A stretch of DNA of 64,000 nucleotides, from positions 62,001 to 126,000 of the IMG/VR virus record IMGVR_UViG_3300022602_000024. One strand, 5' to 3'. Shown here piece by piece: positions 1 to 25,112 of the stretch (position 1 is the first letter of the stretch; each line of letters starts with the position of its first letter). Both the position numbers and the translations under genes were made by a program. Below the pieces are notes generated by a model. It did no database searches and was not told where the DNA came from. It saw nothing but the letters and a program-made list of their open reading frames with translations.

Positions 1-2
1 CC

Positions 3-1747: not shown

Positions 1748-1765
1748 CACTTGCTACACCTTTTA
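1728..1765 (+). terminator. Inverted repeat / probable intrinsic terminator overlapping the promoter
   Basis: AAGGTGTAGCA (1728-1738) pairs with TGCTACACCTT (1752-1762), 13-nt loop, followed by TTATT. Confidence 0.55.
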
Positions 1766-1772
1766 TTCTATT

Positions 1773-2120
1773 ATGAGCGAAGTCGAACAGTTAACTAAAC
1801 AAATTAAACAGGCCACAGACTATCAAATCAATAAAACCATTCTACGGGAAAAGATTCAAACGGATCTACACTTTACCTATAATGGTGGATTATTTAAAGC
1901 CACACAAGAACTGATTGCTTTTGTATATGCTTGGAGCGGCACTGAAGAATTTTGGCCCTGGGATCACGGCAATCCCATTTTCTTAGAAGATACCTACGGT
2001 AATCCCATACGCATAGATAATCGTCAAGAATTTTATCAACGTGCCTGTGAACACTATCAACAGGCAATGAATACCTGGCATCAACAACATGAAGAACTCA
2101 AACGAATTAGAAAAATCTAG
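1773..2120 (+). CDS. Hypothetical protein
   Basis: 115-aa ORF that overlaps the next gene in an operon. Confidence 0.7.
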   Translation: MSEVEQLTKQIKQATDYQINKTILREKIQTDLHFTYNGGLFKATQELIAFVYAWSGTEEFWPWDHGNPIFLEDTYGNPIRIDNRQEFYQRACEHYQQAMNTWHQQHEELKRIRKI

Positions 2121-2916
2121 GGGTGCGGTTGTATTTGCGTTCAATACCGTAGTTGATTATGTCGCTATTGCAGATCAAACCAGCAGACTAATCGCACACA
2201 AGTTGCAACTGCCTGTGACATTGATTACAGATGCTGCCGCAGATCCAAAATTTGCTTACGATAAAATCATAAGAATCAATAACGATCCTACGTCGGAAAA
2301 TCAACGAGTAGACTCGGATCACACAGTAACAGAATGGCGCAACTTTGGGAGATATCTTGCATATGAACTTACACCGTATGATGACACTATTTTGCTTGAT
2401 ACAGATTATCTGGTACTCGATTCTAGCCTTAACACCTTATTTGAGACAGATTTTGACTACCGGTTAATGCATCATAATAAAACTCCTAAGGGCGCAGACT
2501 ACGAAATGATGGGACCAACTAGTTTACCGTTTGTTTGGGCCACTGTGGTCCTGTTTAGAAAAACAGAAAAGAGTCGATTGTTTTTCAATTTGGTTGGGCG
2601 CATACAACGTCATTATCATTATTATCGTTTGTTGTATAACATACAAGATCGTAATTTTAGGAATGATTTTGCGTTTGCTATTGCCAACAACATCATTAAC
2701 GGTTATAACTTAAACGAATCGCAAAGTATACCATGGCCCATGTTTACCATAGACGAAAAAATAGTTGATATAAGGGCAGACGGCCATATACTTAGAGTAT
2801 ACCACGATGATCACGCAACTATAGTGCCGCATCAGAATATACACATAATGGATAAAGAATATTTACAAAGCAAAAACTTTAAAAGAATGATTGGAATAAT
2901 CTGTGAGCCAACATAA
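2089..2916 (+). CDS. GT-A fold glycosyltransferase-like protein (GT8-like)
   Basis: 'TPYDDTILLDTDYL' contains a DxD motif; later 'RNDFAFAIA' and a C-terminal His. Confidence 0.6.
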   Translation: MKNSNELEKSRGAVVFAFNTVVDYVAIADQTSRLIAHKLQLPVTLITDAAADPKFAYDKIIRINNDPTSENQRVDSDHTVTEWRNFGRYLAYELTPYDDTILLDTDYLVLDSSLNTLFETDFDYRLMHHNKTPKGADYEMMGPTSLPFVWATVVLFRKTEKSRLFFNLVGRIQRHYHYYRLLYNIQDRNFRNDFAFAIANNIINGYNLNESQSIPWPMFTIDEKIVDIRADGHILRVYHDDHATIVPHQNIHIMDKEYLQSKNFKRMIGIICEPT

Positions 2917-3739
2917 AGAACAACAGGGCTTTGTGACTTTTGCCATCAATACTCCCGAAGTCAACTACGGAGAACTTGCATATCTACAATGCTTGAATGT
3001 CAAATCCACGCAACAAAACAATCGTTATGCAGTTATTGTTGATGTTAACACATACGAATCGTTTACCAAACAACAACTTGATACATTTGATTATGTAATA
3101 CAAATTGGTGTTGATAGAGACAATCCATTTAGTGCAGAACCTATGGTCTGGCACCATACACCATTTAAAGAAACAATCAAATTGGAAAGTGATCTGTTGT
3201 TCACCCGCAGTATTGACCATTGGTGGACTGCGTTTAGGCTACGCAATGTTTGTTTAAGTACGCATGCCAGGGCCGCTACTGGTGCCATGCTCGATGGGTT
3301 TATTAAATATAGAGAATTATTCAAAGCCAATCAATTGCCTGACATATACAACGGATTAATGTATTTTAGATACACGCAAGAAGCACATGACTTTTTTCTT
3401 ACTGCCAGAAACATTTTTGAAAACTGGGACATTGTTAGTGCTGAATTAATCAGATGCAATGTTCCTGCCAGCACTGATGTAGTATATGCCATAGCCGCAT
3501 TGATACTAGGTGAAGACATAGTGACCATGCCCAGTCTAGACTTCCTAAATTTTGTGCATATGAAGTCAGGTTTCAATGGATGGAGCGATGCACGCACTTG
3601 GTTAGAAACAGTGGTCAACGAACGTGATGGCGATATCATACGCATCAACAACTTGAACCAATATCATCCGGTGCACTACTACGATAAAACTTACTGCACC
3701 CAAGAATTGATTAAATACTATGAGTCCAGAAGAACTTGA
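2903..3739 (+). CDS. GT-A glycosyltransferase-like protein, paralogue of the preceding gene
   Basis: 'TPFKETIKLESDLL' (ExD variant), 'YNGLMYF', 'TDVVYAIA', 'FVHMK' are collinear with 2089-2916. Confidence 0.55.
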   Translation: MSQHKEQQGFVTFAINTPEVNYGELAYLQCLNVKSTQQNNRYAVIVDVNTYESFTKQQLDTFDYVIQIGVDRDNPFSAEPMVWHHTPFKETIKLESDLLFTRSIDHWWTAFRLRNVCLSTHARAATGAMLDGFIKYRELFKANQLPDIYNGLMYFRYTQEAHDFFLTARNIFENWDIVSAELIRCNVPASTDVVYAIAALILGEDIVTMPSLDFLNFVHMKSGFNGWSDARTWLETVVNERDGDIIRINNLNQYHPVHYYDKTYCTQELIKYYESRRT

Positions 3740-4076
3740 ATTTTGGAGAGAAGTTGAATCTCTCATTGCCCCTCCTGTAGAAACTGTAATAGAATACCGC
3801 TTGCATTATGATGCTGCAGGCGATATTGTTACTGCTTCAATGGCCAATCACCCAGAATCCAACCAATACATAGTTGTAGATCGAGCCACATACGAGAGAT
3901 ATTTTGAGTATCGTGTGGAAAAAGGCCAGTTAAAAAAGATAGACAAGGACTCGGGATTTAGTGTAAAATTACACAAAGCCTCTGATGGTTTTCGAGTAGT
4001 TAAGAATCACGCTGGTATTATACTGGACGCTGACGAAACATATACAGACACAGAATATTATGACACAAATCGTTGA
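3720..4076 (+). CDS. Hypothetical protein
   Basis: 118-aa ORF overlapping both neighbours. Confidence 0.65.
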   Translation: MSPEELEFWREVESLIAPPVETVIEYRLHYDAAGDIVTASMANHPESNQYIVVDRATYERYFEYRVEKGQLKKIDKDSGFSVKLHKASDGFRVVKNHAGIILDADETYTDTEYYDTNR

Positions 4077-4956
4077 TGTAGCAGATTTAGATTGCATTTA
4101 TTTAACATATGATGAACCTCAAAAAGAAGAATTTTGGATCAAGATCCAAAACATGGTACCCTGGGCTAAACGAGTTGATGGAATCAAGGGCAGTGATGCG
4201 GCTCACAAAGCAGCCGCGGATGCTAGCAATACTGATAGGTTTGTGCTTATCGACGGCGATAACTTGCCTGATGCTGATTTCTTTAACCTCCAGTTACATT
4301 TGGATAGCACCAATGATGCTTGTGTTTTTCGTTGGCGGGCTCGTAACAGTATTAATGGCCTAATGTACGGCAATGGTGGTATGAGTTGTTGGACAAAAGA
4401 ATTCGTCTACAATATGAAAACACACGAAGCGTCAGATGGATCAGATGACACCGCAGTGGAGTTCTGTTTTGATCCCAACTACTGGGCCATGCACGACTGT
4501 TACAGCACAACCTATCCTGATGCAACACCTTATCAAGCCTGGCGTGCTGGCTATAGAGAAGGTGTTAAGATGTGTTTGGATCGTGGAGCAAAACCCACGA
4601 TAGAAGAATTTAGTCAACGTGTTCAAGGACGCAACTATGATAACCTATGCATCTGGCAAAGTGTCGGAGCAGATAACCCCAATGGCCTGTGGGCCATTTA
4701 CGGAGCACGGCTGGGTACATTCATGACCATGTGCGAAAAGTGGGAATATAGAGATGTACAAGATTTTGATAGACTCAAAAAGTTATGGGAAACTTTTGGT
4801 AAGTTAGATCCTGTAACAGAAATCAACAAGCTGACCAAACCTTTGCAAAACCGACTGGGATTACCTATTACATTATTAGATAGCAATGCTAGTCAGTTTT
4901 TTAAACATCATTATCGTGCGGTGTTTAAAAATAGAGGACCAATGATTCGTGAATAA
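4060..4956 (+). CDS. GT-A (GT2-like) glycosyltransferase-like protein
   Basis: 'RVDGIKGSDAAHKAAA...RFVLIDGDN' with a DxD motif in GT-A context. Confidence 0.6.
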   Translation: MTQIVDVADLDCIYLTYDEPQKEEFWIKIQNMVPWAKRVDGIKGSDAAHKAAADASNTDRFVLIDGDNLPDADFFNLQLHLDSTNDACVFRWRARNSINGLMYGNGGMSCWTKEFVYNMKTHEASDGSDDTAVEFCFDPNYWAMHDCYSTTYPDATPYQAWRAGYREGVKMCLDRGAKPTIEEFSQRVQGRNYDNLCIWQSVGADNPNGLWAIYGARLGTFMTMCEKWEYRDVQDFDRLKKLWETFGKLDPVTEINKLTKPLQNRLGLPITLLDSNASQFFKHHYRAVFKNRGPMIRE

Positions 4957-6334
4957 GTCAGATTTTATGGCAAGTGCTGAGTGGATGAAAGATCACTTGG
5001 GAGAAGGCCTGTGCTTGGCTAAATGGAAGCAGGTTAGTCTACATTTACCCACAGGACTCAACAATAGTTGTTACCATCCTCCACTACATCAAATTGATGC
5101 GGCAGCACTCAAAGACAATCCTGGTGCATTACACAATACTGCCCACAAAAAAGAGCAGCGCAAGATTATGCTCCGACATGAACGTCCTAGCGAGTGTCAA
5201 TACTGCTGGAACATGGAAGACCTGGGCCGGTTAAGTGACAGGCATTACCGTTCAGGTGAGCGTTGGGCTGCAGAAGAATACGACACAATCGTTAACAGTA
5301 CAGGAGATGAAGATGATGTTATCCCCGCATACGTGGAGGTTAATTTTAACCACGCTTGCAATTTGGCTTGCAGCTATTGCAGCCCTCAGTTTAGCAGTAC
5401 GTGGCAAACAGAAATTGACCGTTTTGGTGGCTATCCTACTAGTACTATTCACAACGATGCTAGTCATTTCACTGGGCGCAATCGTCCTATTCCCGCCTCC
5501 GGCGATAACCCCTATGTAGACGCATTTTGGGCCTGGTGGCCCGAACTATACCCCAAACTAAAACATTTTAGAATGACTGGTGGCGAACCATTAATGGACA
5601 AGAATACCTATAAGGTATTTGACTATGTCCTGGCTATGCCTAACCCCGAACTGCACTTAAATGTTACTAGTAACTTCAGCGTAGAAGATAGCTTGTTTGA
5701 AAAGTATATGGGCTATGTTAAACAACTATGCTCAACTCAAATTGAACACTTTATGCAGTTTGTGAGTCTGGACTCCGGCCAGTATCAACACGCAGAATAC
5801 ATTAGACATGGATTAAATTTCCATCGTATGCAAAATAACGTACATAGGTTCCTGCACGAAATTCCCTACCGCAATAGTCTAACATTTATTATTACAATGA
5901 ATAACCTGAGTGTACTAGGTCTGCAACGCCAGTTAGAATGGATACTTGACTTGCGTAAGTCCTACAGTACCACATACCAACGTGTTTGGTTTGATACTCC
6001 TGTGTTACGTAAACCTGAATGGCAAAGCCTACAGATACTGCCGCCCATATATGCTGATCATTTGGATCGTATGGCAGACTGGATGGAGTTGAATTTAGAA
6101 ACTGCCAAGGACCCATTTCATGGATTTAAAGACTATGAAGTGCAAAGACTGCGTAGAGACATTGCCTGGATGAGAGAAGGTAGCAATTTAGATCCCAAGT
6201 ATGTTATACTGCAAAAAGCAGACTTTTATAGATTTTTTAACGAACACGATAAAAGACGTCGTACAGATTTTTTAGGAACTTTTCCGCAGATGCGAGAATT
6301 TTGGAAAGAATGCGAATACTATGCCAAGAATTAA
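4949..6334 (+). CDS. Radical SAM protein with N-terminal SPASM/Twitch-like Cys domain
   Basis: CNLACSYC (CxxxCxxC), 'MTGGEPL'; N-terminal C..KW...SCYH...CQYC. Confidence 0.85.
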   Translation: MNKSDFMASAEWMKDHLGEGLCLAKWKQVSLHLPTGLNNSCYHPPLHQIDAAALKDNPGALHNTAHKKEQRKIMLRHERPSECQYCWNMEDLGRLSDRHYRSGERWAAEEYDTIVNSTGDEDDVIPAYVEVNFNHACNLACSYCSPQFSSTWQTEIDRFGGYPTSTIHNDASHFTGRNRPIPASGDNPYVDAFWAWWPELYPKLKHFRMTGGEPLMDKNTYKVFDYVLAMPNPELHLNVTSNFSVEDSLFEKYMGYVKQLCSTQIEHFMQFVSLDSGQYQHAEYIRHGLNFHRMQNNVHRFLHEIPYRNSLTFIITMNNLSVLGLQRQLEWILDLRKSYSTTYQRVWFDTPVLRKPEWQSLQILPPIYADHLDRMADWMELNLETAKDPFHGFKDYEVQRLRRDIAWMREGSNLDPKYVILQKADFYRFFNEHDKRRRTDFLGTFPQMREFWKECEYYAKN

Positions 6335-7676
6335 TAACGAAACCGACTTAGAATATAAACGCAGAGTGATTGACATCAAGTCGGATTCATTCTGCGGAGC
6401 AAAATGGTACAATGCCACTATATGGCTTGGATCGGGCATGACTACTAGTTGCCACCATCCATTGCCTCATCGAATTGACATTGATGATGTCAAACGTAAT
6501 CCCAAAGCATTACATAACACGCAAAAGAAAAAGATGGAGCGTGAACAGATGCAGAAAGGAGAGCGTCCTGCTGGATGTGAGTATTGCTGGAAAATAGAAG
6601 ACATTGGTAGAGATAATATTTCTGATCGTGTGTACAAAACAATCATTTATAAAGACGAGGAACTAAGAGATGCTTATGCTAGGCCAGCACGCCATGACGT
6701 GGATTTACGAACGCTTGAGATTGCTTTTGATCGTACATGCAATTTTGGGTGTAGTTACTGTAACCCTGCTTTCAGTAGCACTTGGGTTAAGGATATCGAT
6801 GTTCATGGACCCTATACACATCTCACTTCAGACGGCAGGAATCATTTTACTCATAGCCATGATAGTAGTCAACTTTATACTTTTAATCAACATAATCCTT
6901 ACACTGAGGCGTTCTTTAAATGGTGGGAGACCGACCTTCATAGAACGCTTACTGAACTTAGGTTAACTGGTGGCGAACCATTGATGAGTGGAGAAACCTG
7001 GAAGTTATTAGATTGGTTTCGAACTAGAGAAGTAAACCCTGACATGCGTTTTGCGCTTAACAGTAATCTTGGTGCCAAAGACGAGTTGATTGATCGCATG
7101 ATCGAAGCCACACAACATATTGATCACTTTCATTTATACACCAGTAACGAAAGTATGGGCGCACAAGCAGAATACATACGTGACGGCCTTGACTGGACGA
7201 CATGGACTGCTAATGTAGAAAAAGTGTTAAGTCAAGGGCGCATTGAAGGCTTCCATATGATGTGTACTATTAATGCATTATGCTTAGATACGCTACCTGA
7301 GTTTTTAGATCAATGTATAGCTTGGAAAACCCGTTACGGCAAAGACTATCCTACATTTACACTAAATATTTTACGCTTTCCTAGTTTTCAATCACCACTT
7401 GTGTTATCGGATGACATAAGAACATATTACAAATATAATTTACAACAGTGGTTTGACAACAATACCGCAAATCCTTTCTTACACGAAATGGAACGTAATC
7501 AAGTTCAGCGACTAATAGATTATTTAGATGTAGTTAAAACTCCGCATTCGGGCGCAGCAGAACAAACAATGCTACAACAAGACTTTAAACAATTTTACAC
7601 ACAATATGATCAGCGACGAAATAAGAATTTTATTGCAACATTTCCAGCAGTATGCGAATGGTATAATTCACTATGA
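6321..7676 (+). CDS. Radical SAM protein with N-terminal SPASM/Twitch-like domain
   Basis: CNFGCSYC, 'LTGGEPL'; N-terminal CGAKW...SCHH...CEYC. Confidence 0.85.
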   Translation: MPRINNETDLEYKRRVIDIKSDSFCGAKWYNATIWLGSGMTTSCHHPLPHRIDIDDVKRNPKALHNTQKKKMEREQMQKGERPAGCEYCWKIEDIGRDNISDRVYKTIIYKDEELRDAYARPARHDVDLRTLEIAFDRTCNFGCSYCNPAFSSTWVKDIDVHGPYTHLTSDGRNHFTHSHDSSQLYTFNQHNPYTEAFFKWWETDLHRTLTELRLTGGEPLMSGETWKLLDWFRTREVNPDMRFALNSNLGAKDELIDRMIEATQHIDHFHLYTSNESMGAQAEYIRDGLDWTTWTANVEKVLSQGRIEGFHMMCTINALCLDTLPEFLDQCIAWKTRYGKDYPTFTLNILRFPSFQSPLVLSDDIRTYYKYNLQQWFDNNTANPFLHEMERNQVQRLIDYLDVVKTPHSGAAEQTMLQQDFKQFYTQYDQRRNKNFIATFPAVCEWYNSL

Positions 7677-8989
7677 GCAAAGATTTTTATAACAAAGGGT
7701 ATGACTATAATGCTCGTAAACCGTACTTTGTTGATCAAGTAGATCTGACTGAGCAAGAGTGGGCAAGATTAACGGAAAGCGATACATTTTGTATGTTGCC
7801 TTGGATGCATATGCACGCCTTTCCTGATGGTCGTGCATATCCTTGTTGTCTAAGTGATTATTGGCATCCGGTAGGGGACTTGCGCAAGAACACCATGGCC
7901 GAAGTTTGGAATCAAGACGCATACCGGACCATGCGCAGTAACATGTTGCAGGACAAGCCATGTAAAGAATGTACCAAGTGTTACGAGCAAGAACGACATG
8001 GTGCTTTTAGTATGCGCAACGACAGTAATAGAAACTACGGGCATTTAATCAAAGAAACCAACAATACTCATGAAGATGGCACTCACCCAGAATTTAAAAT
8101 ACGATATTGGGATGTGCGTTTTAGTAATCTTTGTAATTTTAGTTGTCGCAGTTGCGGTCCTATCTTTAGCAGTAACTGGTACAATGATCATGTAAAGTTA
8201 TACAATCGTAAACCTGATGTGTTAGGCAGAGACATGGCCAGGGTAGAATACACCACAGGCGACGAAGATGATATGATAGCACAAATGATGCCGCATGTGC
8301 CCTATCTTGAACAGGTGTACTTTGCTGGTGGCGAACCGCTTATAATGAAAGAGCATTATTTCCTATTAGAAAAACTAATAGAAGCTGGCAAAACTGATAT
8401 TCGTTTGCAATACAATACAAACTTTAGTGAACTACATTTTAAAGACAAACATGTATTTGAATACTGGAAACATTTTAAAAATGTGTCAGTGGGTGCTAGT
8501 TTAGATGGCATGGGTGCACAGGCAGAACTGATACGTAAAGGAACAGATTGGCAACAAACCGTTGAAAATCGTGAACGCATGATGCGGGAAGTTCCACATG
8601 TGGATTTTTATGTCAGCAGTACAGTTAGTAGCATGAATGTATTGCACGTATTGGACTTTCATAAGTCTTGGACTAAAATGGGATTAATCAATGCCAAAGA
8701 TTGGAATATCAATATTTGTCAAAGTCCTGAATGGTACCGTATAGATATATTCCCAGACGAGTTTAAACAACGTGTTATCTATCCTGCTTATGAAGAGCAT
8801 ATTGCTTGGCTTGATCCACAGGATACTCTGCGTCGTGCAACTACAGGATATCAAAGTTTATTGAGTTTAATGCGCGGCAATGATGGCACTCAACATTGGC
8901 CCAGATTTGTTGAGGAGATATCTGTATTAGATAATCTACGAAATGAAAACTTTTGGGAGACATTTCCTGAGTTTGAGGAATTAAAATGA
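7673..8989 (+). CDS. Radical SAM protein with N-terminal SPASM/Twitch-like domain
   Basis: CNFSCRSC, 'FAGGEPL', 'YNTN'; N-terminal CMLPW...PCC...CTKC. Confidence 0.85.
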   Translation: MSKDFYNKGYDYNARKPYFVDQVDLTEQEWARLTESDTFCMLPWMHMHAFPDGRAYPCCLSDYWHPVGDLRKNTMAEVWNQDAYRTMRSNMLQDKPCKECTKCYEQERHGAFSMRNDSNRNYGHLIKETNNTHEDGTHPEFKIRYWDVRFSNLCNFSCRSCGPIFSSNWYNDHVKLYNRKPDVLGRDMARVEYTTGDEDDMIAQMMPHVPYLEQVYFAGGEPLIMKEHYFLLEKLIEAGKTDIRLQYNTNFSELHFKDKHVFEYWKHFKNVSVGASLDGMGAQAELIRKGTDWQQTVENRERMMREVPHVDFYVSSTVSSMNVLHVLDFHKSWTKMGLINAKDWNINICQSPEWYRIDIFPDEFKQRVIYPAYEEHIAWLDPQDTLRRATTGYQSLLSLMRGNDGTQHWPRFVEEISVLDNLRNENFWETFPEFEELK

Positions 8990-14273: not shown

Positions 14274-14276
14274 TGA

Positions 14277-17177: not shown

Positions 17178-17806
17178 CACGTCGTATACTGGTAATGGGA
17201 CTGCCAGGCTCGGGTAAAACTACATTCAGTCAAAACTTAGTTAAACGCCTGATGCTGACACATTCAGTATCGTGGTACAATGCCGATAGCGTGCGTGAGC
17301 AATTCAATGATTGGGACTTCTCGCCAGAGGGTCGTGCTAGGCAAGTTCAGCGTATGATTGATCTTAGTAACGATTGCGGCAGTAACTTTGCTATCTGTGA
17401 CTTTGTTTGCCCTACTCAAGAACTTCGCGATGTATTCGAAGCTGATGTTGTTGTATGGATGGATACTATCGCTGAGGGTAGATTCGAAGATACTAATCGT
17501 ATGTTTGAAAAACCAAATCACGCTACGTATCGTGTAACTGATTGGTCAGACACTTGGGTAAAATTGATAGCTGCAGATTTGATACAAACACCTAGTGAAA
17601 CGCATGTTAGAAGTTTAGTTAAAGCCGTTAGCTGGCGTATTATAGGAACTACAGAAACATTCTTGATAAGTTTGCTAATAACAGGACGATTAGGAACTGC
17701 TGGAGGAATTGCCGCAATACAAGCAGTTGCATCAACTATTTTGTACTGGTTGCACGAGAGGTACTGGAATAACATCAGGTGGGGCAAGAGGAATAGCCTG
17801 ACCTAA
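17174..17806 (+). CDS. Adenylyl-sulfate (APS) kinase-like P-loop kinase fused to a DUF2061-like membrane domain
   Basis: 'GLPGSGKTT', 'ADSVR', 'DFSPEGRARQ', 'FVCP', 'FEKP'; C-terminal 'RSLVKAVSWRIIGT...YWLHERYW'. Confidence 0.65.
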   Translation: MTRRILVMGLPGSGKTTFSQNLVKRLMLTHSVSWYNADSVREQFNDWDFSPEGRARQVQRMIDLSNDCGSNFAICDFVCPTQELRDVFEADVVVWMDTIAEGRFEDTNRMFEKPNHATYRVTDWSDTWVKLIAADLIQTPSETHVRSLVKAVSWRIIGTTETFLISLLITGRLGTAGGIAAIQAVASTILYWLHERYWNNIRWGKRNSLT

Positions 17807-18949
17807 TTTAAGATTTAAAGAATACGGTGGAACAAATTGATAAAATCTACTAATGTCTTTAAGACTGCTGGTTAAGTGATCCCACTCACGTCGTACAAAT
17901 TCTGGACTATTAAATAGATTGTAATTGTGATCTAACACAGATTGCATATCGTTGAGCATTGCAGTCTGCTCATTGATTGATAATGCACACAATTTCTTTA
18001 ATACTTGTGTTACTGCTTGTAGTCTGGCGACTGGATCTTCTATGCGATCATAACTTTCATCCCAGTAATCGCTGAATGTTTGGAAGCCATATTCTCGAAA
18101 GTACGCTAAGTTATTTGCACATCCTAACAAGATAAACGGCATGCGCAATGCAATGGGTTTGAATATCTTTTCTGTTAAATGAGTCTTACTTTGCCAAAAG
18201 CAAGTTTCGGTTACAACAAATACAAAACTTTTCATTAGTTGTTCCATGGGACTCAATATCATACTTTGATTGGGTATACCTTGTCCTTCAAAGTCGATAC
18301 GTAACTCTGGTAACTGATTTATATTGTTGATGGCACTACTAACCAACTCAGGATCCAAATTAAACTTTTCAATACCGCCAACGAGATTGTCGTCAAACCG
18401 ACCACCATCGGGGCAGTCCCGACTGAAACTAATATATCCCGAATCTAATATGTTGTTTGTGTACAGTTCATTTACAAACAAACTACGATATATACGATCA
18501 TTGCTGGTTAATCGGTTAAAAGTTATATAGGTCTTTTCTAACTGTCGCTCTGCAGGCGGCACAATGTTTGGCACAAAGTCTGTGCCACGATACCAATCGG
18601 CAGCGGCAAATATGTGAAAGAAATAATTGATATCGGCAAACCCATACCGTTCGCAAATCAAATCTTTTTCTGCACTATGTTTTTCTGTGCTAACTAATAT
18701 GTAAGGACCTCGTGTGGTAGCAACAATATGATCAAATACTGCGCTATTATAGTTTAATCCTAGAGGTTCTTGATCATAAAAGATAAACAATGGACCTCGA
18801 CGTGCAGGCGGATTGGTATCATCCCGAATTATTTCTATGTTTTCTGGTAGAGTTGCTCCAAATGGGTATAGGTAAACCACCCTGGGATCTGTTATAATAG
18901 TCTTTAAATAGTGATAGACGTTTTCGTAATGCTGAGCAATATTATACAT
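17732..18949 (-). CDS. Putative GT-B-like glycosyltransferase (TEK..KP family)
   Basis: 'VVTET...HLTEKIFKPI...PFILLG...GFQTFSDYWDESYD' resembles the GT10-like C-terminal motif. Confidence 0.45.
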   Translation of the reverse strand: MYNIAQHYENVYHYLKTIITDPRVVYLYPFGATLPENIEIIRDDTNPPARRGPLFIFYDQEPLGLNYNSAVFDHIVATTRGPYILVSTEKHSAEKDLICERYGFADINYFFHIFAAADWYRGTDFVPNIVPPAERQLEKTYITFNRLTSNDRIYRSLFVNELYTNNILDSGYISFSRDCPDGGRFDDNLVGGIEKFNLDPELVSSAINNINQLPELRIDFEGQGIPNQSMILSPMEQLMKSFVFVVTETCFWQSKTHLTEKIFKPIALRMPFILLGCANNLAYFREYGFQTFSDYWDESYDRIEDPVARLQAVTQVLKKLCALSINEQTAMLNDMQSVLDHNYNLFNSPEFVRREWDHLTSSLKDISRFYQFVPPYSLNLKLGQAIPLAPPDVIPVPLVQPVQNS

Positions 18950-21900
18950 GTTTGATGTTTTTTATTCGGGACCAAAACCAGGATTGTTTGCCTTTGAGCG
19001 TCCTGCTGACAGTTTGGCAGATGCAGTGAGTCGGTCAAGAACCGAATACTGTTGGTATATTTATGGGGCGAATGATTACTCAAACTTTGATTTTGATTAT
19101 GTACCCCCGCCATGGCAATCGCAGTTTGTGCATGTTTGGCCTAACCAATGGCAACCAGATGGCAACATATACCTGGCACATAAACATAACAATGGCCAAT
19201 GGCACTTTCATGAGCAAGCGGTACGACGTTTAGGTATACAGGAATACTGGCACATACCCGACCATATAGATCCTGCTTCGGTAGATACACTATGGTGCCC
19301 GGATCCCTTGGCTCCACCTTACATATATCATTTTCCCAGTCAGCATCAAAGTGCATCGGGTGTGACCTATACAGTACCGGGTGCAGTTGATGTTAAATTG
19401 GTAGATGCATTTACTGTTCGTGCTGTACCTAACCCAACTAGATTTGGACACAATATTGCGGTTGCAGAGTTTGACTACTCGTGGCATCCTAATCCACTGG
19501 ATCCCCCTATGAACTATGTGTTTGGCAATCAATGGAATCCGCCAACAATAGAAGCCACTGTGGTTTATCATGTAGAAGGCGCAACAGCTACACAATACAT
19601 GTCGCAGCTTGCTCGTGTGGCGCAAGACATGCGTTACTGGGAAATCTTAGATGATGTATCAGAGTTTGATTATTCATGGCGACCAAACCCTACTGAACCT
19701 CCTTACATCTATGTATTTGGCAATCAATGGATGCCCCCAGAAGTAAGACCAGCATTGCAATATCGAGTTCCGGGAGCCACGGATGTAAAATACATGGCTG
19801 AACCTCGTGCATATCGTACAGGGAATCCAGAGAAATTTATTACTAATTGCGACTGTGTGTTTGATTACTCGTGGGAACCTGATCCCGGATCACCTGCTTA
19901 CAACTATGTGTTTGGTAATCAATGGTGGCCGGCAGAAGTAATGCCCACTGTTGAATATAGAATGACTGGTGCCACAGAAACTAAGTTTATGATGGAGCCT
20001 GTAGCAAAGTTGTCTGCAACAGAAGATCATTGGGTTACTTTGTTTGAGTGCGAGTTTGACCGCAGTTGGTGCCCAGATCCTGGGTCTCCTCCTTACATCT
20101 ATGTTTTCGGTAATCAATGGTATCCTGCAGAAGTTATGCCCACCGTTGAGTATCACATGCCCGGTGCCAGTGAGCGCAAGTACGTAGATTATCATAGGGC
20201 ACAGTTAACGCCTATTATGGATCGCTGGACGATACCTGAAGAAGTTGATGCGGCCAATATTGATTTTTCGTGGCACCCACATCCTAAGGACTCTCCTTAT
20301 ATACATCACTTTGGCACTGAACACCAAATGAGCATTGGGTTAACTTATACTGCACCTGGTGCTACAGAACTAAAGTTTGAAGGCGATATTCCTAGGATTG
20401 TCAAAGAAAAACGTGCAGTTGAAGTAGTAGATATCTTTTATGTGGATCGTAGCAATCCTGCCGCAGGTGTGCGTTTTGATCGATTGAAAGAGCGTTATCC
20501 TAATATACAACGAATACGTTATGCTAACAGTATGATGGCTACTATACAAAGATGCATAGCAAGAGCCCGGACTACTAAGTTCTGGGTCATCAGCAGCGAA
20601 TACAGTTATGTGAACTTTGATTTTACTTGGCATGCACAGCCTTGGCAGAGCTACATGACACACGTATTCCCTAGTCAGCACAATCGTTGGTCGGACACAT
20701 TCCTGATTAATAAGTGGGAATTTGAGCGTCATGCTAAGTGGGCAGAGAGCTTGGAACAGTTTCCTAACTTGAACTTTGTTACTAACCAAATAGTGGCCCG
20801 ACCTGAAAACTTAGACAACATCTACTATGTTGATCACGGCAATCCCGAGAGTGCAGAACAATTTGCGTTGTTGCAACGTGAATTCCCGGAGATCGCACGC
20901 ACACGTTTTGTGGACAACTATTTGGATGTTATGAAGCGTATTATGGCCACTGCTGAAACTGAATACGTTTGGATACTGAACAGCATCTGCAACTATGATT
21001 TCTTTGATTTTACTTGGAAGCCGGAACCTTGGCAAGCGGAAATGATTCACTGTTTTGGTAACCAACAGTTTCAAAATCGTGGGGACACATTCTACATACA
21101 TGTTGAATCGTTTAAAACACAAATGGTTGATCTTGAGCTGTTGGATTGGTTTAATGTAATAAACTATTGTACAGATCAACGTGTGGAACGCTGGCCCACT
21201 CCGGTGCACTTATACACTTCAGACAACTTAATTGAAGAAATTCGGAATTACGAGTTCACTACACCATATGTGTTCTTTACCAACCAACCCGATATTGGTA
21301 TAAAGGACTTGCCTTGTCTATGGACCAAAAAAGACCGTGTTATAAAACGTATTACACGTAGCGGGGCTAGTGTAATGGTGCCGCGAGATATCAAGGCTGA
21401 TTTACAGTCACAAATCTACGATTATCCCTACCTAGAGAAGTCAGAACGACTGATAAATGACTACTATTGGAAGGGTAAACCGGGGTTGGACATAGTATAT
21501 ATCAGCAACGGAGAACCCGACGAAGAACGCTGGTATAATCATTTGTGCTATCAAAGCAATACCACTGACATAGAATGGGTACGCGGAGTAAACGGGCGAG
21601 TTGCTGCTTATCAAGAAGCTGCACGTCGTAGTCGTACTCCTTGGTTCTTTGCGGTATTTGCCAAATTAGAAGTTGCGGGCGGGGAGTTTCCTTGGTTTGA
21701 TTGGCAACCTGATTTCTGGCAAGGTCCCAAACACTATATTTTCAATGCACGTAATCCCTTAAACGGATTAGAATATGGTCACCAAGGTGTCGTAGCCTAC
21801 TGTAAGAGTTTGGTATTGAGCAACAATAACCCAGGCATTGACTTTACATTATCGCAACCACACGAATCAGTACCTATACTAAGCGGAACTGCACACTTCA

Positions 21901-22163
21901 ATCAAACGGCCTGGATGACTTGGCGTACTGCTTTCCGTGAAGTGATCAAGCTCAAACACTTCAATGCAACAGAACCTACACTGGAAACTGAGCATAGATT
22001 AACGGTATGGCTTAATAAGGCCGAAGGTGCATTTGCAGCAGATTGTTTAGCAGGTGCCCGTGATGCAGTTGAATACTATGACGGTGTTGGGGGAGATTAT
22101 GAAAAACTTAAACTAAGTTTTGAGTGGAAATGGCTTCAAGAGTATTATGATAATAAATACTAA
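18948..22163 (+). CDS. 1071-aa multi-repeat protein with degenerate GT-A-like modules
   Basis: Six ~65-aa tandem repeats plus several GT-A-like modules; the C-terminal domain is collinear with 4060-4956. Confidence 0.75.
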   Translation: MFDVFYSGPKPGLFAFERPADSLADAVSRSRTEYCWYIYGANDYSNFDFDYVPPPWQSQFVHVWPNQWQPDGNIYLAHKHNNGQWHFHEQAVRRLGIQEYWHIPDHIDPASVDTLWCPDPLAPPYIYHFPSQHQSASGVTYTVPGAVDVKLVDAFTVRAVPNPTRFGHNIAVAEFDYSWHPNPLDPPMNYVFGNQWNPPTIEATVVYHVEGATATQYMSQLARVAQDMRYWEILDDVSEFDYSWRPNPTEPPYIYVFGNQWMPPEVRPALQYRVPGATDVKYMAEPRAYRTGNPEKFITNCDCVFDYSWEPDPGSPAYNYVFGNQWWPAEVMPTVEYRMTGATETKFMMEPVAKLSATEDHWVTLFECEFDRSWCPDPGSPPYIYVFGNQWYPAEVMPTVEYHMPGASERKYVDYHRAQLTPIMDRWTIPEEVDAANIDFSWHPHPKDSPYIHHFGTEHQMSIGLTYTAPGATELKFEGDIPRIVKEKRAVEVVDIFYVDRSNPAAGVRFDRLKERYPNIQRIRYANSMMATIQRCIARARTTKFWVISSEYSYVNFDFTWHAQPWQSYMTHVFPSQHNRWSDTFLINKWEFERHAKWAESLEQFPNLNFVTNQIVARPENLDNIYYVDHGNPESAEQFALLQREFPEIARTRFVDNYLDVMKRIMATAETEYVWILNSICNYDFFDFTWKPEPWQAEMIHCFGNQQFQNRGDTFYIHVESFKTQMVDLELLDWFNVINYCTDQRVERWPTPVHLYTSDNLIEEIRNYEFTTPYVFFTNQPDIGIKDLPCLWTKKDRVIKRITRSGASVMVPRDIKADLQSQIYDYPYLEKSERLINDYYWKGKPGLDIVYISNGEPDEERWYNHLCYQSNTTDIEWVRGVNGRVAAYQEAARRSRTPWFFAVFAKLEVAGGEFPWFDWQPDFWQGPKHYIFNARNPLNGLEYGHQGVVAYCKSLVLSNNNPGIDFTLSQPHESVPILSGTAHFNQTAWMTWRTAFREVIKLKHFNATEPTLETEHRLTVWLNKAEGAFAADCLAGARDAVEYYDGVGGDYEKLKLSFEWKWLQEYYDNKY
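19245..20390 (+). repeat. Six tandem ~195-nt coding repeats (FDYSW.P.P..PPY.YVFGNQW...P...Y..PGA...K)
   Basis: Equivalent codons start at 19281, 19470, 19665, 19860, 20055 and 20259. Confidence 0.85.
22153..22159 (+). promoter_or_regulatory. T4-like late promoter motif ATAAATA
   Basis: Lies 4 nt upstream of the ATG at 22164. Confidence 0.55.
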
Positions 22164-23066
22164 ATGCTCATTAATGAAGTTATCACAGAAGGCGCAACGC
22201 CAGTATTATTCCACTATGCAGGTATAACGTCTGCCCGCGACATCCTGCGTGACGGTGTTTTTAAACTTAGCAGTACCACAGGAAATCCCAGCGAAGCCGG
22301 ATATGCTCCTAAAGGCTACCAATACTTTTTAAGCACTACCCGTAGTAAAGTTGGCGATTATCATCGTTATGTAGGATCTGGTGCCGCTATGTTTGTGTTA
22401 GATGGTAATTGGTTTGCACAACGCTATCCAGTTAAACCCATTGACTATTGGGAACGTGCTTGGCAACATAGTCCAGACCGCACACGGGAATCAGAAGACC
22501 GTGTGTTTAGCAAGGATAACGAAATTCCCATTGACGGTGTGCGTGCCCTACATGTGCTAATGAAAGAGCAAAGCGAAGTTCGCAGTCCTGCTACACGTGA
22601 AATGCTAATTGCGGCAAAACAACGTGGTATTCCTGCTTACTTGTATATGGACGAAACTGCTTGGAGATTGCAAGATACACGTCGTGCAGTTAGTATCAAA
22701 CAAGCCGCTAGTGTATTACAAGGACCTAAACCTACGCCTAGAAGTTATCGCAGTAGAAACTTCTTGGAAGACATATTAGAAATGATCTTTAAAAAGCGTA
22801 AAGCAGATCTTACTGACAGTGCTCGAAAGCGTGTGCGTACTTTGTTGGTGTATGGTGCTAGTTATCCCAACGAAGATGATGGCATTGGTGTAGACATGAG
22901 CAATGCTCGCAAACCTGGCAGCAGTGACTATGCGAGCGCAGTTAAGATTAATCAGTTTATGCGAGCCAATGGCATAAAAAATACTGTGGAACTAAAAAAC
23001 TTTCTAGTGCGTAAATGGGACGCTACTGACTTTTTTAAAGAAGATGTTAGCGAAGAAACTGTTTAA
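22164..23066 (+). CDS. Putative head-packaged protein with an ADP-ribosyltransferase-like domain
   Basis: N-terminal 'MLINEVITE', late promoter, 'LFHY.....ARDILRDG.FKLS', 'FLSTTRS', 'ESEDRV'. Confidence 0.45.
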   Translation: MLINEVITEGATPVLFHYAGITSARDILRDGVFKLSSTTGNPSEAGYAPKGYQYFLSTTRSKVGDYHRYVGSGAAMFVLDGNWFAQRYPVKPIDYWERAWQHSPDRTRESEDRVFSKDNEIPIDGVRALHVLMKEQSEVRSPATREMLIAAKQRGIPAYLYMDETAWRLQDTRRAVSIKQAASVLQGPKPTPRSYRSRNFLEDILEMIFKKRKADLTDSARKRVRTLLVYGASYPNEDDGIGVDMSNARKPGSSDYASAVKINQFMRANGIKNTVELKNFLVRKWDATDFFKEDVSEETV

Positions 23067-24165
23067 TAGTTTCAACGATTCGTTCTACTTCCCCATCTGT
23101 TAATTCGGGATAGATAGGCAAGCTCAAACACTCTCTAGTAAACGCATAACTTTCCACATAGGGATTGTTGGCATAATCCACATACTCATAACCAACTGGT
23201 AATTCATATAATGGCTTATCGTAGTTGATCTTGGTTTCAATACCATTGTTGGCAAGATGCGATTTCAATGCATGGCGACTGGCCAGTCTAATAACAAACT
23301 TACTCCACGCACTTTCTACATGTTCTCCGGGCAGTATGCAATCTACATAACCGCTTAACTGATCAATGTAATAACTAGCAATATCAGTTCTGCGGTCTTG
23401 CCAACGATCAAAGTGCCCCAACTTGACCAACATTTGCGCACAATCTACTTCAGACATTTTACTATTAGTGCCAATATCGTGATGTCCTCCGGGCTTGCCA
23501 TTGTCCCGCAAGTTTTCCATTGCGGCTGCAACACCATCGTCGTCGGTCAATATCATGCCACCTGAACCATAGTTGTTTAGATTCTTAGTAGGATCGAAAC
23601 TCAAACAACTAATATTGCCCAGGGAACCTGATGGTTGCCCTTTATATCGAGCACCAAAACTTTGTGCAGCATCTTCAATAATAAACATGTCTCGATTAAA
23701 GAATTCTGTTTGCAGTCTAAATCTATCCCAATCAATCACATGCCCCCACAAGTTGGCATACATGATCATATTGACTCCGGCACCAGCCAAGGCAAAGTCT
23801 ATGCTTTCTAAATCCATTAAGCCATTGGCATCTGTGTCGCAAAACACAGGCTCACGTCCGGCCATTAATACACTATTCAGCGTGGCAGCAAAACTCAGTG
23901 AGGGTATGAGAACCTTGCCATCTGTATACAGGCCAATGGTGCTGGCAAAGATTAGGGCCTGGGTGCATGAACCCACTGCAATAGCATGCGCACGATTACA
24001 ACGTGCGGCCATGTTTTGCTCAAAGTAACGAGTAAAGTTTCCGTCTAGGACTTTTCCTGTGCGCAGCACCTGGTCAGTGATATCCAGCAATTCTTCTCGT
24101 AGGTTGGCATATTGACGGTCAACGCCAAAGAACGGAATTATATCTTTGTTTGCCAATATTCGCAC
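23047..24165 (-). CDS. DegT/DnrJ/EryC1/StrS PLP-dependent sugar aminotransferase
   Basis: 'IIEDAAQSFGA', 'SFDPTKNLNNYGSGGMILT', 'LSLPIYPEL'. Confidence 0.9.
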   Translation of the reverse strand: MRILANKDIIPFFGVDRQYANLREELLDITDQVLRTGKVLDGNFTRYFEQNMAARCNRAHAIAVGSCTQALIFASTIGLYTDGKVLIPSLSFAATLNSVLMAGREPVFCDTDANGLMDLESIDFALAGAGVNMIMYANLWGHVIDWDRFRLQTEFFNRDMFIIEDAAQSFGARYKGQPSGSLGNISCLSFDPTKNLNNYGSGGMILTDDDGVAAAMENLRDNGKPGGHHDIGTNSKMSEVDCAQMLVKLGHFDRWQDRRTDIASYYIDQLSGYVDCILPGEHVESAWSKFVIRLASRHALKSHLANNGIETKINYDKPLYELPVGYEYVDYANNPYVESYAFTRECLSLPIYPELTDGEVERIVETIKQFLR

Positions 24166-25112
24166 TTCTTAAACCAATCGTAATACATTTTCACGCCTTG
24201 GCGAAAGTTAATAATAGGATTATATCCCAAATCCTTTTGAGCGGCATCTATGTTTAGTCTGCCCCTGCTGGGAAAGTCTTGACTCTTGTCTTGAATATCA
24301 ATCTTACCTCGTCCTACAGTTTTAATACACAAAGCAGCTGCATCTAGTAAGGTAATTGATTTGCCAGCACAACGAGTAATGTTATAGATATTCCCATTGG
24401 CTTCAGGTTTGACGGCGGCCAACACAATTCCAGCAGCCACATCATTTACGTGAGTAAAGTCCAGGCTTTCTGTCGCTCCGTGCACCACTAGTGTTTCATC
24501 TCGCATTGCGGCAAGTAAGAACTTGGACACAACTCGGTCTTCGACATCAAGCTCTCCGTACACTGCCGAAGGGCGAACAATACTGTAATCAAAACACCCA
24601 CGACGGTTGTAATCCTGGACAAGTTTTTCTCCCATATACTTCATTATACCATACTGCCCAACTGGATCGCAATCGGCAGTCTCTCTTACTCCGTCTCGGA
24701 AATTGCCGTAGACCATGCTTGAACTTACATACACAAACTTGGGTATACGGTAGTTCTTGGTCATTTCTAACAAGTTAATCAATCCTGTGCCCATTACATC
24801 AGCACCCCAAATGGGATTTTTGCTGAATACTTTTTGCCGGGGAAAACTTGCTAGATGAATAACGGCAGCAGTACTACCGCACCATGTCCTGAAGAAATCT
24901 TCTATCTTTTTATGATCTCTCAAATCTAAGTGATGTACGTTGGCACGAATACGTTTTTTACGTTCAGTTATCAAATATTCAAGTTCGTCGGGATTGACAA
25001 AACCATAGTCTGTTGCACTATCAATGATAATGCATTCATGGCCTTGTGCCTCAAGTTGCCGCACAACATTGTGTCCAATGAATCCAGCGCCTCCGGTTAC
25101 AATATATCTCAT
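24138..25112 (-). CDS. NAD-dependent sugar epimerase/dehydratase (extended SDR)
   Basis: 'TGGAGFIG', 'SSSMVYG', 'YGIMK', 'DFTHVNDVA'. Confidence 0.9.
   Translation of the reverse strand: MRYIVTGGAGFIGHNVVRQLEAQGHECIIIDSATDYGFVNPDELEYLITERKKRIRANVHHLDLRDHKKIEDFFRTWCGSTAAVIHLASFPRQKVFSKNPIWGADVMGTGLINLLEMTKNYRIPKFVYVSSSMVYGNFRDGVRETADCDPVGQYGIMKYMGEKLVQDYNRRGCFDYSIVRPSAVYGELDVEDRVVSKFLLAAMRDETLVVHGATESLDFTHVNDVAAGIVLAAVKPEANGNIYNITRCAGKSITLLDAAALCIKTVGRGKIDIQDKSQDFPSRGRLNIDAAQKDLGYNPIINFRQGVKMYYDWFKKCEYWQTKI

Follow-up and report, generated by a model that had tools for sequence, protein, structure and literature searches.

Several groups of viruses carry their own protein glycosylation genes, such as those for virion O-glycosylation in mycobacteriophages, the Mimivirus fibril glycans and the chlorovirus capsid glycans. 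In these systems the virus supplies soluble glycosyltransferases together with a nucleotide-sugar dehydratase and a DegT-type aminotransferase, glycosylation takes place in the cytoplasm without the lipid-carrier machinery of the host, and the genes lie near structural genes. None of them is known to include radical-SAM enzymes, a carbamoyltransferase or SGNH arrays. A phage TobZ/NodU-type carbamoyltransferase is known to make 5-carbamoyloxymethylcytosine in DNA, and such genes co-occur with thymidylate-synthase homologs (PMC8670742). Nol-like carbamoyltransferases of T4-like cyanophages and pelagiphages are regarded as auxiliary or host-takeover genes of unknown substrate. Finally, aminoglycoside biosynthetic clusters combine a carbamoyltransferase (TobZ), a twitch-domain radical-SAM enzyme (the domain was defined in BtrN), DegT-type aminotransferases and a kinase.

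We analyzed a 64,000-nucleotide stretch (the window) of an uncultivated freshwater jumbo phage (IMG/VR record IMGVR_UViG_3300022602_000024, positions 62,001 to 126,000). Positions 1773-25112 of the window were found to carry a 23-kb island of about two dozen genes for soluble enzymes that appear to build and decorate a complex sugar chain. A preliminary description had listed three GT-A-like genes, five radical-SAM genes, four SGNH-like genes, a carbamoyltransferase, an APS-kinase-like fusion, a GT-like gene, a 1071-aa repeat/GT-like protein and convergent DegT and epimerase genes, and this observation was confirmed, as every gene class was present at the coordinates given. The features of the island and its borders are as follows.

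1-734 (+), 3' end of a 449-aa tail-fibre gene (context, not part of the island)
747-1706 (+), u319, Ser/Thr/Gly/Asn-rich fibre-like protein and candidate glycan acceptor
1719-1762 (+), transcription boundary: promoter-like site (1719-1747) overlapping a terminator hairpin (1728-1762) followed by a U-run
1773-2120 (+), A115, conserved small protein of unknown role
2089-2916 (+), B275, GT8-like GT-A glycosyltransferase
2903-3739 (+), C278, GT8-like (glycogenin-like) GT-A glycosyltransferase
3720-4076 (+), D118, small accessory protein
4060-4956 (+), E298, divergent GT-A-fold (GT2-like) protein, by model
4949-11509 (+), R1-R5, five tandem N-terminal-twitch radical-SAM paralogs (4949-6334, 6321-7676, 7673-8989, 8986-10197 and 10190-11509)
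11502-11792 (+), F96, doubtful gene
11789-12862 (+), G357, conserved protein of unknown fold family, a likely partner of the radical-SAM enzymes
12840-14939 (+), S1-S3, three accessory SGNH/DUF6071 paralogs (12840-13565, 13635-14273 and 14277-14939)
14905-16407 (+), NodU/TobZ-type O-carbamoyltransferase
16404-17177 (+), H257, fourth SGNH-like protein, accessory
17174-17806 (+), K210, P-loop kinase (APS-kinase-like) fused to the DUF2061 membrane hairpin, accessory
17732-18949 (-), I405, GT10 (fucosyltransferase)-like protein
18948-22163 (+), J1071, repeat protein with degenerate GT-A-like modules
22164-23066 (+), L300, unknown and poorly conserved
23047-24165 (-), DegT-family PLP sugar aminotransferase
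24138-25112 (-), extended SDR, NDP-sugar 4,6-dehydratase or epimerase
25109-26486 (-), canonical thymidylate synthase (ThyA) and DHFR, neighbours and not members

Stop/start overlaps of 4-35 nt link nearly all plus-strand genes. Although the preliminary description placed the island directly after the virion genes, its sequence signals indicate that it is not co-transcribed with the tail genes by default. A TTGACC-17-TATAAT site, matching the sigma-70 promoter at 11 of 12 positions, overlaps a covarying hairpin (-22.7 kcal/mol, z -4.4) with a U-run between u319 and A115. About 30 relatives keep the promoter and a palindrome of different sequence, while others have a GC hairpin plus TATAAT. The tail-fibre gene upstream has a C-terminal intramolecular-chaperone domain (Pfam Peptidase_G2, E 1.3e-6; PHROG tail fibre), and the full gene was read in the sequence L083 (3065-4414). 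Related genes (more radical SAM, DUF6071, GalE and a DegT fragment) lie outside 1773-25112.

The three GT-A-like genes were invisible to Pfam and PHROGs but were supported by other evidence. B275 and C278 are paralogs (hhalign probability 98.5). The C278 profile matched glycogenin-1 at E 0.003 over residues 3-109, and C278 has invariant E95/D97 and H219/K221, while B275 has invariant D104/D106. E298 was modelled with AF2 (pLDDT 79) as a GT-A fold, with Foldseek matches to HddC/RmlT/SunS/GpgS in PDB at E about 1e-2 and to GT2-like proteins in AFDB at E 5.6e-5. It has an invariant D65-G-D67-N68 and is the most conserved non-radical-SAM member. I405 had no Pfam or PDB sequence hit and is GT10-like only by language-model features (Atlas score 0.80 to PF00852 clusters) and an invariant T259-E260-K261. 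The three GT-A assignments and the GT10 assignment rest on weak profile, fold or feature matches (E 0.003 to 0.01; feature score 0.80). J1071 contains about seven FDYSWxPxP..PPYIYVFGNQW units, degenerate GT-A-like modules and a C-terminal E298-like domain, detected by BLAST, that lacks DxD.

All five radical-SAM genes carry Pfam Radical_SAM and SPASM domains and belong to the uncharacterised NCBIfam family NF033640 (N-terminal twitch domain), with scores of 273-402 bits against a cut-off of 170. The window holds at least seven copies. In contrast to aminoglycoside biosynthetic clusters, the twitch domain is N-terminal here and not C-terminal, and the carrier is a phage genome. An invariant CxxxCxxC and four N-terminal Cys were found. 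The paralogs are 22-33% identical to each other, whereas orthologs in relatives have medians of 53-74%. For G357 the AF2 model (pLDDT 90) gave no Foldseek match in PDB and resembled a cyclophilin-like barrel plus helical insert at Z 7-8 only. G357 has 688 representatives in 1.84 billion and occurs naturally fused to an NF033640 enzyme in the protein P0258. F96 was found only in the window's own contig and has no counterpart in relatives.

The carbamoyltransferase has both Pfam domains (Carbam_trans_N, E 1e-33; Carbam_trans_C, E 4e-45), matched the Nol-like PHROG at E 1e-90 and is 47% identical to ORF199 of the cultured Ralstonia phage RsoM2USA. Homologs at 26-34% identity were found in 139 phage records. 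The Nol-like regions of T4-like cyanophages and pelagiphages are not known to have the five-gene radical-SAM array, G357 or the GT8-like/E298 module, and only RsoM2USA and one marine single-cell viral contig were found to pair the enzyme with an NF033640 gene. S1-S3 are paralogs with DUF6071/GDSL hits, an N-terminal GDSF motif (block I) and a C-terminal His, and H257 begins FCGDSF. K210 was found to have P-loop/APS_kinase and DUF2061 domains (Pfam) and a PHROG kinase match at E 5e-24, but APS kinase cannot be claimed beyond a generic P-loop kinase. L300 had no family hit. The DegT protein (Pfam E 2.5e-75) has an SFDPTK lysine motif, and its best NCBIfam models are of the PseC and WecE types, below their cut-offs. 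The SDR (Epimerase, E 8e-42; GDP_Man_Dehyd, E 2e-31) has GGAGFIG and YGIMK motifs.

The preliminary description had made co-occurrence of the genes in related phages a test of its proposal. We found the gene order conserved in 88 full-length IMG/VR loci of 354-kb-class freshwater jumbo phages at 30-80% protein identity, which is far more than chance. The order A-B-C-(D)-E-R1-R5-G357-carbamoyltransferase...J1071-DegT-SDR was kept in 37-39 of 39 and 44-47 of 49 full-length loci. Of the 39 loci, u319 and A115 were found in 38, B275 in 39 and D118, with a conserved C-terminal E.Y..[IT]EYY tail, in 32. J1071 was found in 47 of 49 loci, L300 in five loci only and K210 in about 36% of loci. S1-S3 and I405 both vary from zero to three copies among relatives, and H257 is present in few.

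The front half of the island is also syntenic in RsoM2USA (PMC8504454). Here the order fibre-like ORF355, then A, B, C, x, E, R1 recurs at 25-36% identity beside the structural module and a GDP-mannose 4,6-dehydratase. ORF355 is 25% identical to u319, ORF354 is a homolog of A115 (HMM E 2e-21), and the E298 homolog is 36% identical.

In three bacterial genomes NF033640 genes were found in glycan or deoxysugar loci, often as several full-length paralogs per locus. In Acidobacteriota (locus L177) they lie among GT2, GT4 and GT9 genes, YdjC and methyltransferases. In an alphaproteobacterium (L180) they lie beside an OafA-type acyltransferase-SGNH, an NDP-sugar C-methyltransferase, a dehydratase, a nucleotidyltransferase and a GT2, and in Bdellovibrionales (L178) beside PIG-L and GT genes. 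These uncharacterised surface-polysaccharide-type loci differ from the phage island in holding membrane acyltransferases, GT4/GT9 enzymes and transporters, and in lacking homologs of B275, C278, E298, G357 and I405.

The preliminary description interpreted the island as a phage pathway for a heavily decorated glycan placed on virion proteins, the host surface or DNA, and this was partly supported: the family assignments, the fixed gene order and the bacterial context of the radical-SAM family support a glycan-assembly and tailoring pathway, whereas the acceptor was not settled. The sulfation it listed has no support beyond the weak APS-kinase similarity. The gene families, intact motifs, conservation, gene order, glycan context of the radical-SAM family and G357 fusion were established by the analysis, while every reaction, the expression of the genes and the acceptor are inferred from sequence and from the chemistry of the families, without biochemical data for any member.

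Our preferred explanation, which remains tentative, is a separately transcribed and entirely cytoplasmic pathway that assembles and heavily tailors an oligosaccharide. In this view the SDR and the DegT aminotransferase would turn a nucleotide-hexose into a 4-keto-6-deoxy and then an amino-dideoxy sugar. The two glycogenin-like enzymes, the third GT-A-fold enzyme, the GT10-like enzyme and the multi-module J1071 would build the chain on an acceptor. The carbamoyltransferase would O-carbamoylate it using carbamoyl phosphate and ATP, the SGNH proteins would add or remove acyl esters and the kinase would phosphorylate it. The radical-SAM enzymes, working with G357, would act at unactivated sugar carbons (oxidation, epimerisation, deoxygenation or C-C chemistry).

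The most likely acceptor is in our view a phage protein of the fibre/virion surface, such as u319. No flippase, polymerase, export or lipid-carrier enzyme and no hydrophobic segment was found in any product of the island, which fits direct cytoplasmic glycosylation, as in the viral systems above. The island follows the tail-fibre genes in all relatives, u319 precedes it in 38 of 39 full loci, and the adjacency of a fibre-like gene to the GT module is kept in the distant RsoM2USA. P0258 lies between Laminin_G_3 proteins, and accessory tailoring genes vary in copy number, as expected of a surface glycan under diversifying pressure. However, the terminator and sigma-70-like promoter suggest early rather than late expression and break the operon link to the fibre genes, and synteny with these could simply be inherited genome order. 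Furthermore, in the T4-like contigs L035 and L059 the minimal radical-SAM, carbamoyltransferase and kinase module lies not beside fibres but beside genes that we read, from their N-terminal sequences only, as terminase-, gp32- and UvsX-like.

It is less likely that the same pathway targets the host cell envelope. The enzymes would then rewrite cytoplasmic nucleotide-sugar or lipid-linked O-antigen, capsule or LPS-core intermediates, and the changed surface of the infected cell would give receptor masking, superinfection exclusion or less loss of progeny on cell debris. This agrees with the surface-polysaccharide-type context of bacterial NF033640 homologs, the promoter, the DUF2061 membrane hairpin of the kinase and the filing of Nol-like carbamoyltransferases, common in cyanophages and pelagiphages, as host-takeover or auxiliary genes in PHROGs. 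However, no initiating phosphoglycosyltransferase, flippase, polymerase, ligase, signal peptide or transmembrane enzyme was found in the island, the kinase is present in only about 36% of relatives, and the front module stays beside structural genes even in RsoM2USA.

Hypermodification of phage DNA is unlikely. A hydroxymethyl- or otherwise activated base would be glycosylated, and the sugar or base carbamoylated, acylated and radical-SAM-modified to block host nucleases. As in the 5-hydroxymethylcytosine carbamoyltransferase system (PMC8670742), a carbamoyltransferase with both Pfam domains has a thymidylate-synthase-family gene within 10 kb. The island abuts ThyA/DHFR, the combination of kinase, PLP enzyme and radical SAM recalls thymidine hypermodification clusters, and the window also holds FolE-, QueD- and QueE-like genes. 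However, the adjacent ThyA is a canonical dUMP enzyme, as it scores 350.8 bits against the NCBIfam thymidylate-synthase cut-off of 327, keeps His147 and Asn177 (motifs PCH and PFNIASY) and sits next to DHFR. In contrast, modified contigs in PMC8670742 carry Asp177 (dCMP-specific) with dCMP deaminase/MazG-type genes, while carbamoyltransferases in unmodified contigs are flanked by glycosyltransferases; here the enzyme is flanked by radical-SAM, SGNH and glycosyltransferase genes. No hydroxymethylase, TET or DpdA was found in the window, which covers 64 kb of 354 kb, and four or more glycosyltransferases are many for a base modification.

It is also doubtful that the radical-SAM array and G357 modify a phage protein or peptide directly (cross-links, epimerisation, oxidation), with the glycosyltransferases serving a separate function. 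SPASM/twitch enzymes are best known as peptide and protein maturases, and weak NCBIfam similarities to such maturases were found. P0258 lies between Laminin_G_3 proteins, a relative's G357-fusion locus includes an Asp/Asn hydroxylase-type gene, and the small conserved proteins A115 and D118 are present. However, these two look like ordinary globular proteins, no precursor-peptide-like gene or recognition-element domain was seen, the family is embedded in sugar-enzyme loci in the three bacterial genomes, and in phages the array is always tied to the carbamoyltransferase.

The least likely product is a free aminoglycoside-like or other pseudo-oligosaccharide or nucleoside metabolite that would be made in the infected cell to inhibit competitors or reprogramme the host, because, although the enzymes are all soluble and the carbamoyltransferase, twitch-domain radical SAM, DegT aminotransferase and kinase are typical of aminoglycoside clusters, no cyclitol synthase, exporter or resistance gene was recognised, the GT8-like and GT10-like types and J1071 are atypical for such clusters, and the bacterial contexts look like polysaccharide and not antibiotic loci.

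The window covers about positions 62,001-126,000 of the 354,429-bp IMG/VR contig IMGVR_UViG_3300022602_000024, and near-identical DNA was found in about twenty freshwater and lake metagenome runs from 2016 to 2023. The family-B DNA polymerase of the contig is 52% identical to that of Sinorhizobium phage Phosso, 47% to that of Agrobacterium phage Atu_ph07 and 43% to those of Rak2-like E. coli jumbo phages. A megablast search of the gene island against 50,697 phage records gave no match. Directly upstream of the island lie a subtilisin-like gene and two tail-fibre genes, of which the second ends in an intramolecular-chaperone domain and has its 3' end at 1-734 of the window. It is followed by the gene for u319, a 319-aa Ser/Thr/Gly/Asn-rich fibre-like protein.

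The preliminary description listed GT-A-like, radical-SAM, SGNH-like, carbamoyltransferase, APS-kinase-like, DegT and epimerase genes, and this observation held, as the ORF map and family scans confirmed each class named. The five tandem radical-SAM proteins (R1-R5) score 273-402 bits against the curated cut-off of 170 bits of NCBIfam NF033640, the "twitch domain-containing radical SAM protein" family with an N-terminal twitch domain. The residues C154, C158 and C161 of the CxxxCxxC motif and the N-terminal C40, C59, C100 and C103, a set suited to an auxiliary cluster, were invariant in six window paralogs and in ORF202 of the cultured Ralstonia phage RsoM2USA. The carbamoyltransferase contains both Carbam_trans_N (117 bits against a gathering score of 24) and Carbam_trans_C (154 against 27) and is of the NodU/TobZ type. 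However, it does not reach the NodU equivalog cut-off (132 against 1000), so it is not NodU itself. The DegT aminotransferase, which is encoded on the opposite strand together with an extended SDR, scores 254 bits against 19.8 and contains the SFDPTK motif with the PLP lysine, but reaches no specific equivalog cut-off, so that its assignment does not extend to the sugar. The SDR has intact GGAGFIG and YGIMK motifs.

Three of the SGNH-like proteins are SGNH/DUF6071 paralogs, while the fourth, H257, begins FCGDSF. The block I motif GDSF is present in all four, whereas only 13635-14273 exceeds the DUF6071 cut-off (42.9 against 27) and the GDSL scores are below cut-off. The fusion K210 consists of a P-loop kinase joined to DUF2061. 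The preliminary description had called it APS-kinase-like, but it scores 21.9 bits against 138.7 for NCBIfam apsK, and no sulfurylase or sulfotransferase was recognized among the ORFs scanned. It is a generic P-loop kinase (PHROG kinase), and a sulfation pathway was rejected for lack of partner enzymes.

Pfam and PHROGs returned nothing for A115 (a small conserved protein), B275 and C278 (GT8-like), D118 (small accessory protein), E298 (predicted GT-A fold), G357 (a conserved core protein), H257, I405 (GT10-like), J1071 (repeat protein) or L300, with a Pfam threshold of E 0.01 for the GT8-like proteins. We therefore aligned orthologs of the GT-A-like proteins from related loci. B275 and C278 are paralogs (hhalign probability 98.5). 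The C278 profile matches glycogenin at E 0.003 over the N-terminal 109 residues only, and B275 is linked to the family through C278. B275 has D104/D106 and H252 and C278 has E95/D97 and H219, all invariant in 24 sequences, corresponding to a DxD-type metal site and a downstream His. E298 gave an AlphaFold model of pLDDT 79, for which the best solved structures were GT-A and nucleotidyltransferase folds at E about 1e-2 (best E 7e-3, TM about 0.3), while the best named AFDB matches were GT2-like proteins at E 5.6e-5 with a TM of 0.48. The motif D-G-D-N is invariant in E298. I405 resembles GT10 fucosyltransferases only by language-model features, with a score of 0.80 that is no more than a lead, and by an invariant T259-E260-K261, as no Pfam or PDB sequence hit was obtained. 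J1071 carries about seven FDYSWxPxP...PPYIYVFGNQW repeats and degenerate copies of the N-terminal half of E298, and its C-terminal E298-like domain lacks the DxD. Profiles of B275, G357, I405 and J1071 searched against PDB sequences gave nothing usable. The glycosyltransferase assignments are weak. No product of the island has a hydrophobic segment at the threshold used, and none has a Pfam domain of an initiating phosphoglycosyltransferase, flippase, polymerase or transporter as expected for a Wzx/Wzy- or ABC-dependent polysaccharide pathway. An Rfam search found no family in the window.

Two scans of IMG/VR returned 160 loci, and each locus ORF was assigned to its best window gene. The recurrent order was tail fibre, u319, A115, B275, C278, (D118), E298, R1-R5, G357, (SGNH, zero to three copies), carbamoyltransferase, (H257), (K210), (I405, zero to three copies), J1071, DegT, SDR, ThyA. 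Among 39 full-length loci centred on R2, A115, B275, C278, E298, R1, R4, R5 and G357 were each present in 38-39, while R3 and the carbamoyltransferase were present in 37. Among 49 loci centred on the carbamoyltransferase, R2-R5 and G357 were present in 46-47, J1071 in 47, DegT in 45 and the SDR in 44. These loci are relatives and not independent samples. Median protein identity to the window ranged from 33 to 74%. The five radical-SAM paralogs are 22-33% identical to each other but each has orthologs at 53-74%; the duplication is therefore old and each copy is kept. The number of SGNH genes, the kinase, the number of I405 copies and extra radical-SAM copies (4-7 per locus) vary. F96 and L300 are nearly unique to this contig. 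F96, a 96-aa ORF at 11502-11792 that fills the 280-nt gap between R5 and G357, has no counterpart in any related locus and is probably not a gene, or is a recent insertion. I405 (17732-18949, minus strand) and J1071 (18948-22163, plus strand) start back to back and overlap by 2 nt, so each promoter would have to lie inside the coding sequence of the other gene. I405 also overlaps the 3' end of K210 by 75 nt, and in relatives I405 copies appear on either strand and at several positions.

Further members of the same and of related families were found in the window outside the coordinates of the preliminary description:
40817-42124 (-), NF033640 radical-SAM gene, 244 bits
61688-62983 (-), NF033640 radical-SAM gene, 232 bits
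56169-57230 (-), more distant, divergent SPASM radical-SAM gene, 31 bits and not a member of NF033640
37870-38565 (-) and 47880-49450 (-), given for the remaining members, a fifth DUF6071/SGNH-like gene, a GalE that passes its equivalog cut-off and a 206-aa DegT fragment

Literature searches found no paper on the function of NF033640 and no description of the gene cluster. A scan of GTDB species genomes with an R3 ortholog profile gave 13 loci. Five of these (L164-L168) are phage contigs binned into MAGs named Polynucleobacter, Legionellales, Porticoccaceae and Haliscomenobacter (two), and carry the whole island. This is either contamination of the bins or a hint about hosts; RsoM2USA infects a member of the Burkholderiales, as does any phage of Polynucleobacter. 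In a 513-kb Acidobacteriota contig two full-length and two divergent family members lie among GT2, GT4 and GT9-methyltransferase genes, YdjC and a B12 radical-SAM gene. In an alphaproteobacterial contig the gene lies between an OafA-type acyltransferase-SGNH and an NDP-sugar C-methyltransferase, dehydratase, nucleotidyltransferase and GT2, and in a Bdellovibrionales contig four copies lie with an amidohydrolase, PIG-L and GT genes. These contexts are the main new evidence that the radical-SAM array works on sugars. Another locus (L170), on an 84-kb phage or bacterial contig from a Bacteriovoracaceae MAG, has eight tandem NF033640 genes, 33-55% identical to R1, R2 and R5, without the glycosyltransferase or G357 genes within the 21 kb read. 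The KVP40-like Vibrio phage K566 has three tandem NF033640-type genes (record positions 161548-165950) among unannotated genes, with a PagP-like gene 6 kb downstream. HMMs of B275, C278, E298, G357 and I405 found no homologs in K566 or in the bacterial loci.

The model of G357 is confident (pLDDT 90) but has no Foldseek match in the PDB, and a wide structural scan gave only near-noise cyclophilin-like barrel and helical-bundle matches. AFDB holds unnamed or auto-named cellular relatives, whereas tblastn against cultured phages found none. An exhaustive profile search found 688 representatives among 1.84 billion. One of these, P0258, is a natural fusion of a G357-like domain to a full NF033640 enzyme that is 36% identical to R3, which links the two functionally. 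P0258 lies between Laminin_G_3 proteins.

Between u319 and A115 we identified a promoter-like TTGACC-17-TATAAT at 1719-1747, overlapping a hairpin at 1728-1762 of -22.7 kcal/mol (z -4.4) that is followed by UUUUAUU. About thirty relatives keep a TTGAC(A)-N17-TAnnnT site inside a palindrome whose sequence differs but whose pairing is kept, while others have a GC-rich hairpin, a T-run and then TATAAT; about 60 related loci were compared at this intergenic spot. Judged from sequence, the island is therefore a transcription unit of its own, probably read by host sigma-70 polymerase, and not the tail of the fibre operon. The terminator hairpin has the -10 element in its loop and stem, and could also be an operator.

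Altogether, we consider it likely that the island is a glycan assembly and tailoring pathway, and the interpretation of the preliminary description, a phage pathway for a heavily decorated glycan, is thereby partly supported. The gene families, motifs and conserved gene order rest on direct analysis, whereas every reaction, as well as expression and the acceptor, is inferred. Within this reading a phage fibre or virion protein is the leading acceptor, although the full statement remains tentative. It agrees with a chemistry that appears cytoplasmic and soluble, without lipid-carrier, flippase or polymerase genes. RsoM2USA keeps the order ORF355 (fibre/u319-like), ORF354 (A115), ORF353 (B275), ORF352 (C278), ORF351, ORF350 (E298, 36%), ORF349 (R1, 36%) and ORF348 (E298/J1071-C-terminal-like), next to its structural module and a GDP-mannose 4,6-dehydratase, while its R2-type radical-SAM gene, an SGNH gene and the carbamoyltransferase are located 95 kb away. 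On the other hand, the promoter and terminator separate the island from the fibre genes. In addition, in two further contigs (L035 and L059) the minimal module of one to two radical-SAM genes, carbamoyltransferase and kinase follows genes read, from their N-terminal sequences only, as terminase-, gp32- and UvsX-like.

The host envelope as target is possible but less likely, and is suggested by the bacterial contexts, the early-type promoter and the DUF2061 anchor. Modification of phage DNA is unlikely. A phage TobZ-type enzyme carbamoylates 5hmC, and such genes co-occur with thymidylate-synthase homologs bearing Asp at E. coli position 177 (PMC8670742). However, the ThyA encoded here passes the thymidylate-synthase equivalog cut-off, reads PCH and PFNIASY (His147 and Asn177, with numbering from that paper and our reading of the motif) and is followed by DHFR, and it was therefore rejected as a hydroxymethylase. 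The same paper notes that carbamoyltransferases on unmodified contigs are flanked by glycosyltransferases. No hydroxymethylase, TET or DpdA was seen in the window, which covers only 18% of the genome. QueE-like radical-SAM, QueD/PTPS-like and FolE-like genes (39710-40603, 44322-44801 and 47093-47842, all minus strand) lie within 8 kb of each other, all below the curated cut-offs, and together suggest 7-deazaguanine or pterin synthesis, but no QueC was recognized in the window either. Direct modification of a protein by the radical-SAM array is also unlikely, and a RiPP cluster was rejected since no precursor or recognition element was found. A soluble metabolite is the least likely product.

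Virus-encoded glycan biosynthesis as such is known. What we could not find described is the composition, with a conserved series of N-terminal-twitch radical-SAM enzymes, G357, a carbamoyltransferase and virus-only GT-A families. If the reading is correct it would add radical-SAM chemistry to virus-encoded glycosylation, where it has no known precedent, and would give a first functional context to NF033640 and to G357, a protein of unknown fold family, both of which occur in bacteria as well. A bolder and rather unlikely possibility, which cannot be excluded, is that the N-terminal-twitch enzymes with G357 as partner form a previously unknown class of glycan-modifying radical enzymes. The phage clade would then use five to eight of them in series to make a hypermodified, carbamoylated glycan displayed on its own fibres, a virion decoration with no described counterpart. 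The clade is abundant in lakes worldwide, with thousands of homologs and many independent samples, and if the product is a variable surface glycan on phage or host, it would bear on phage-host recognition in freshwater. As the cultured RsoM2USA carries the front module, the question is accessible at the bench.

The C-terminal tail E.Y..[IT]EYY of D118 (3720-4076) is conserved in 50 orthologs, with the last Tyr in 90% or more. D118 is encoded next to the two glycogenin-like genes, and a role as a tyrosine primer is conceivable. The window also encodes, at 42121-43326, 46561-47010 and 33305-34234 (all minus strand), a D-amino-acid-dehydrogenase-like flavoprotein (439 bits against a cut-off of 494), a cysteine-dioxygenase-like PHROG member and a Dam-type N6-adenine methyltransferase.
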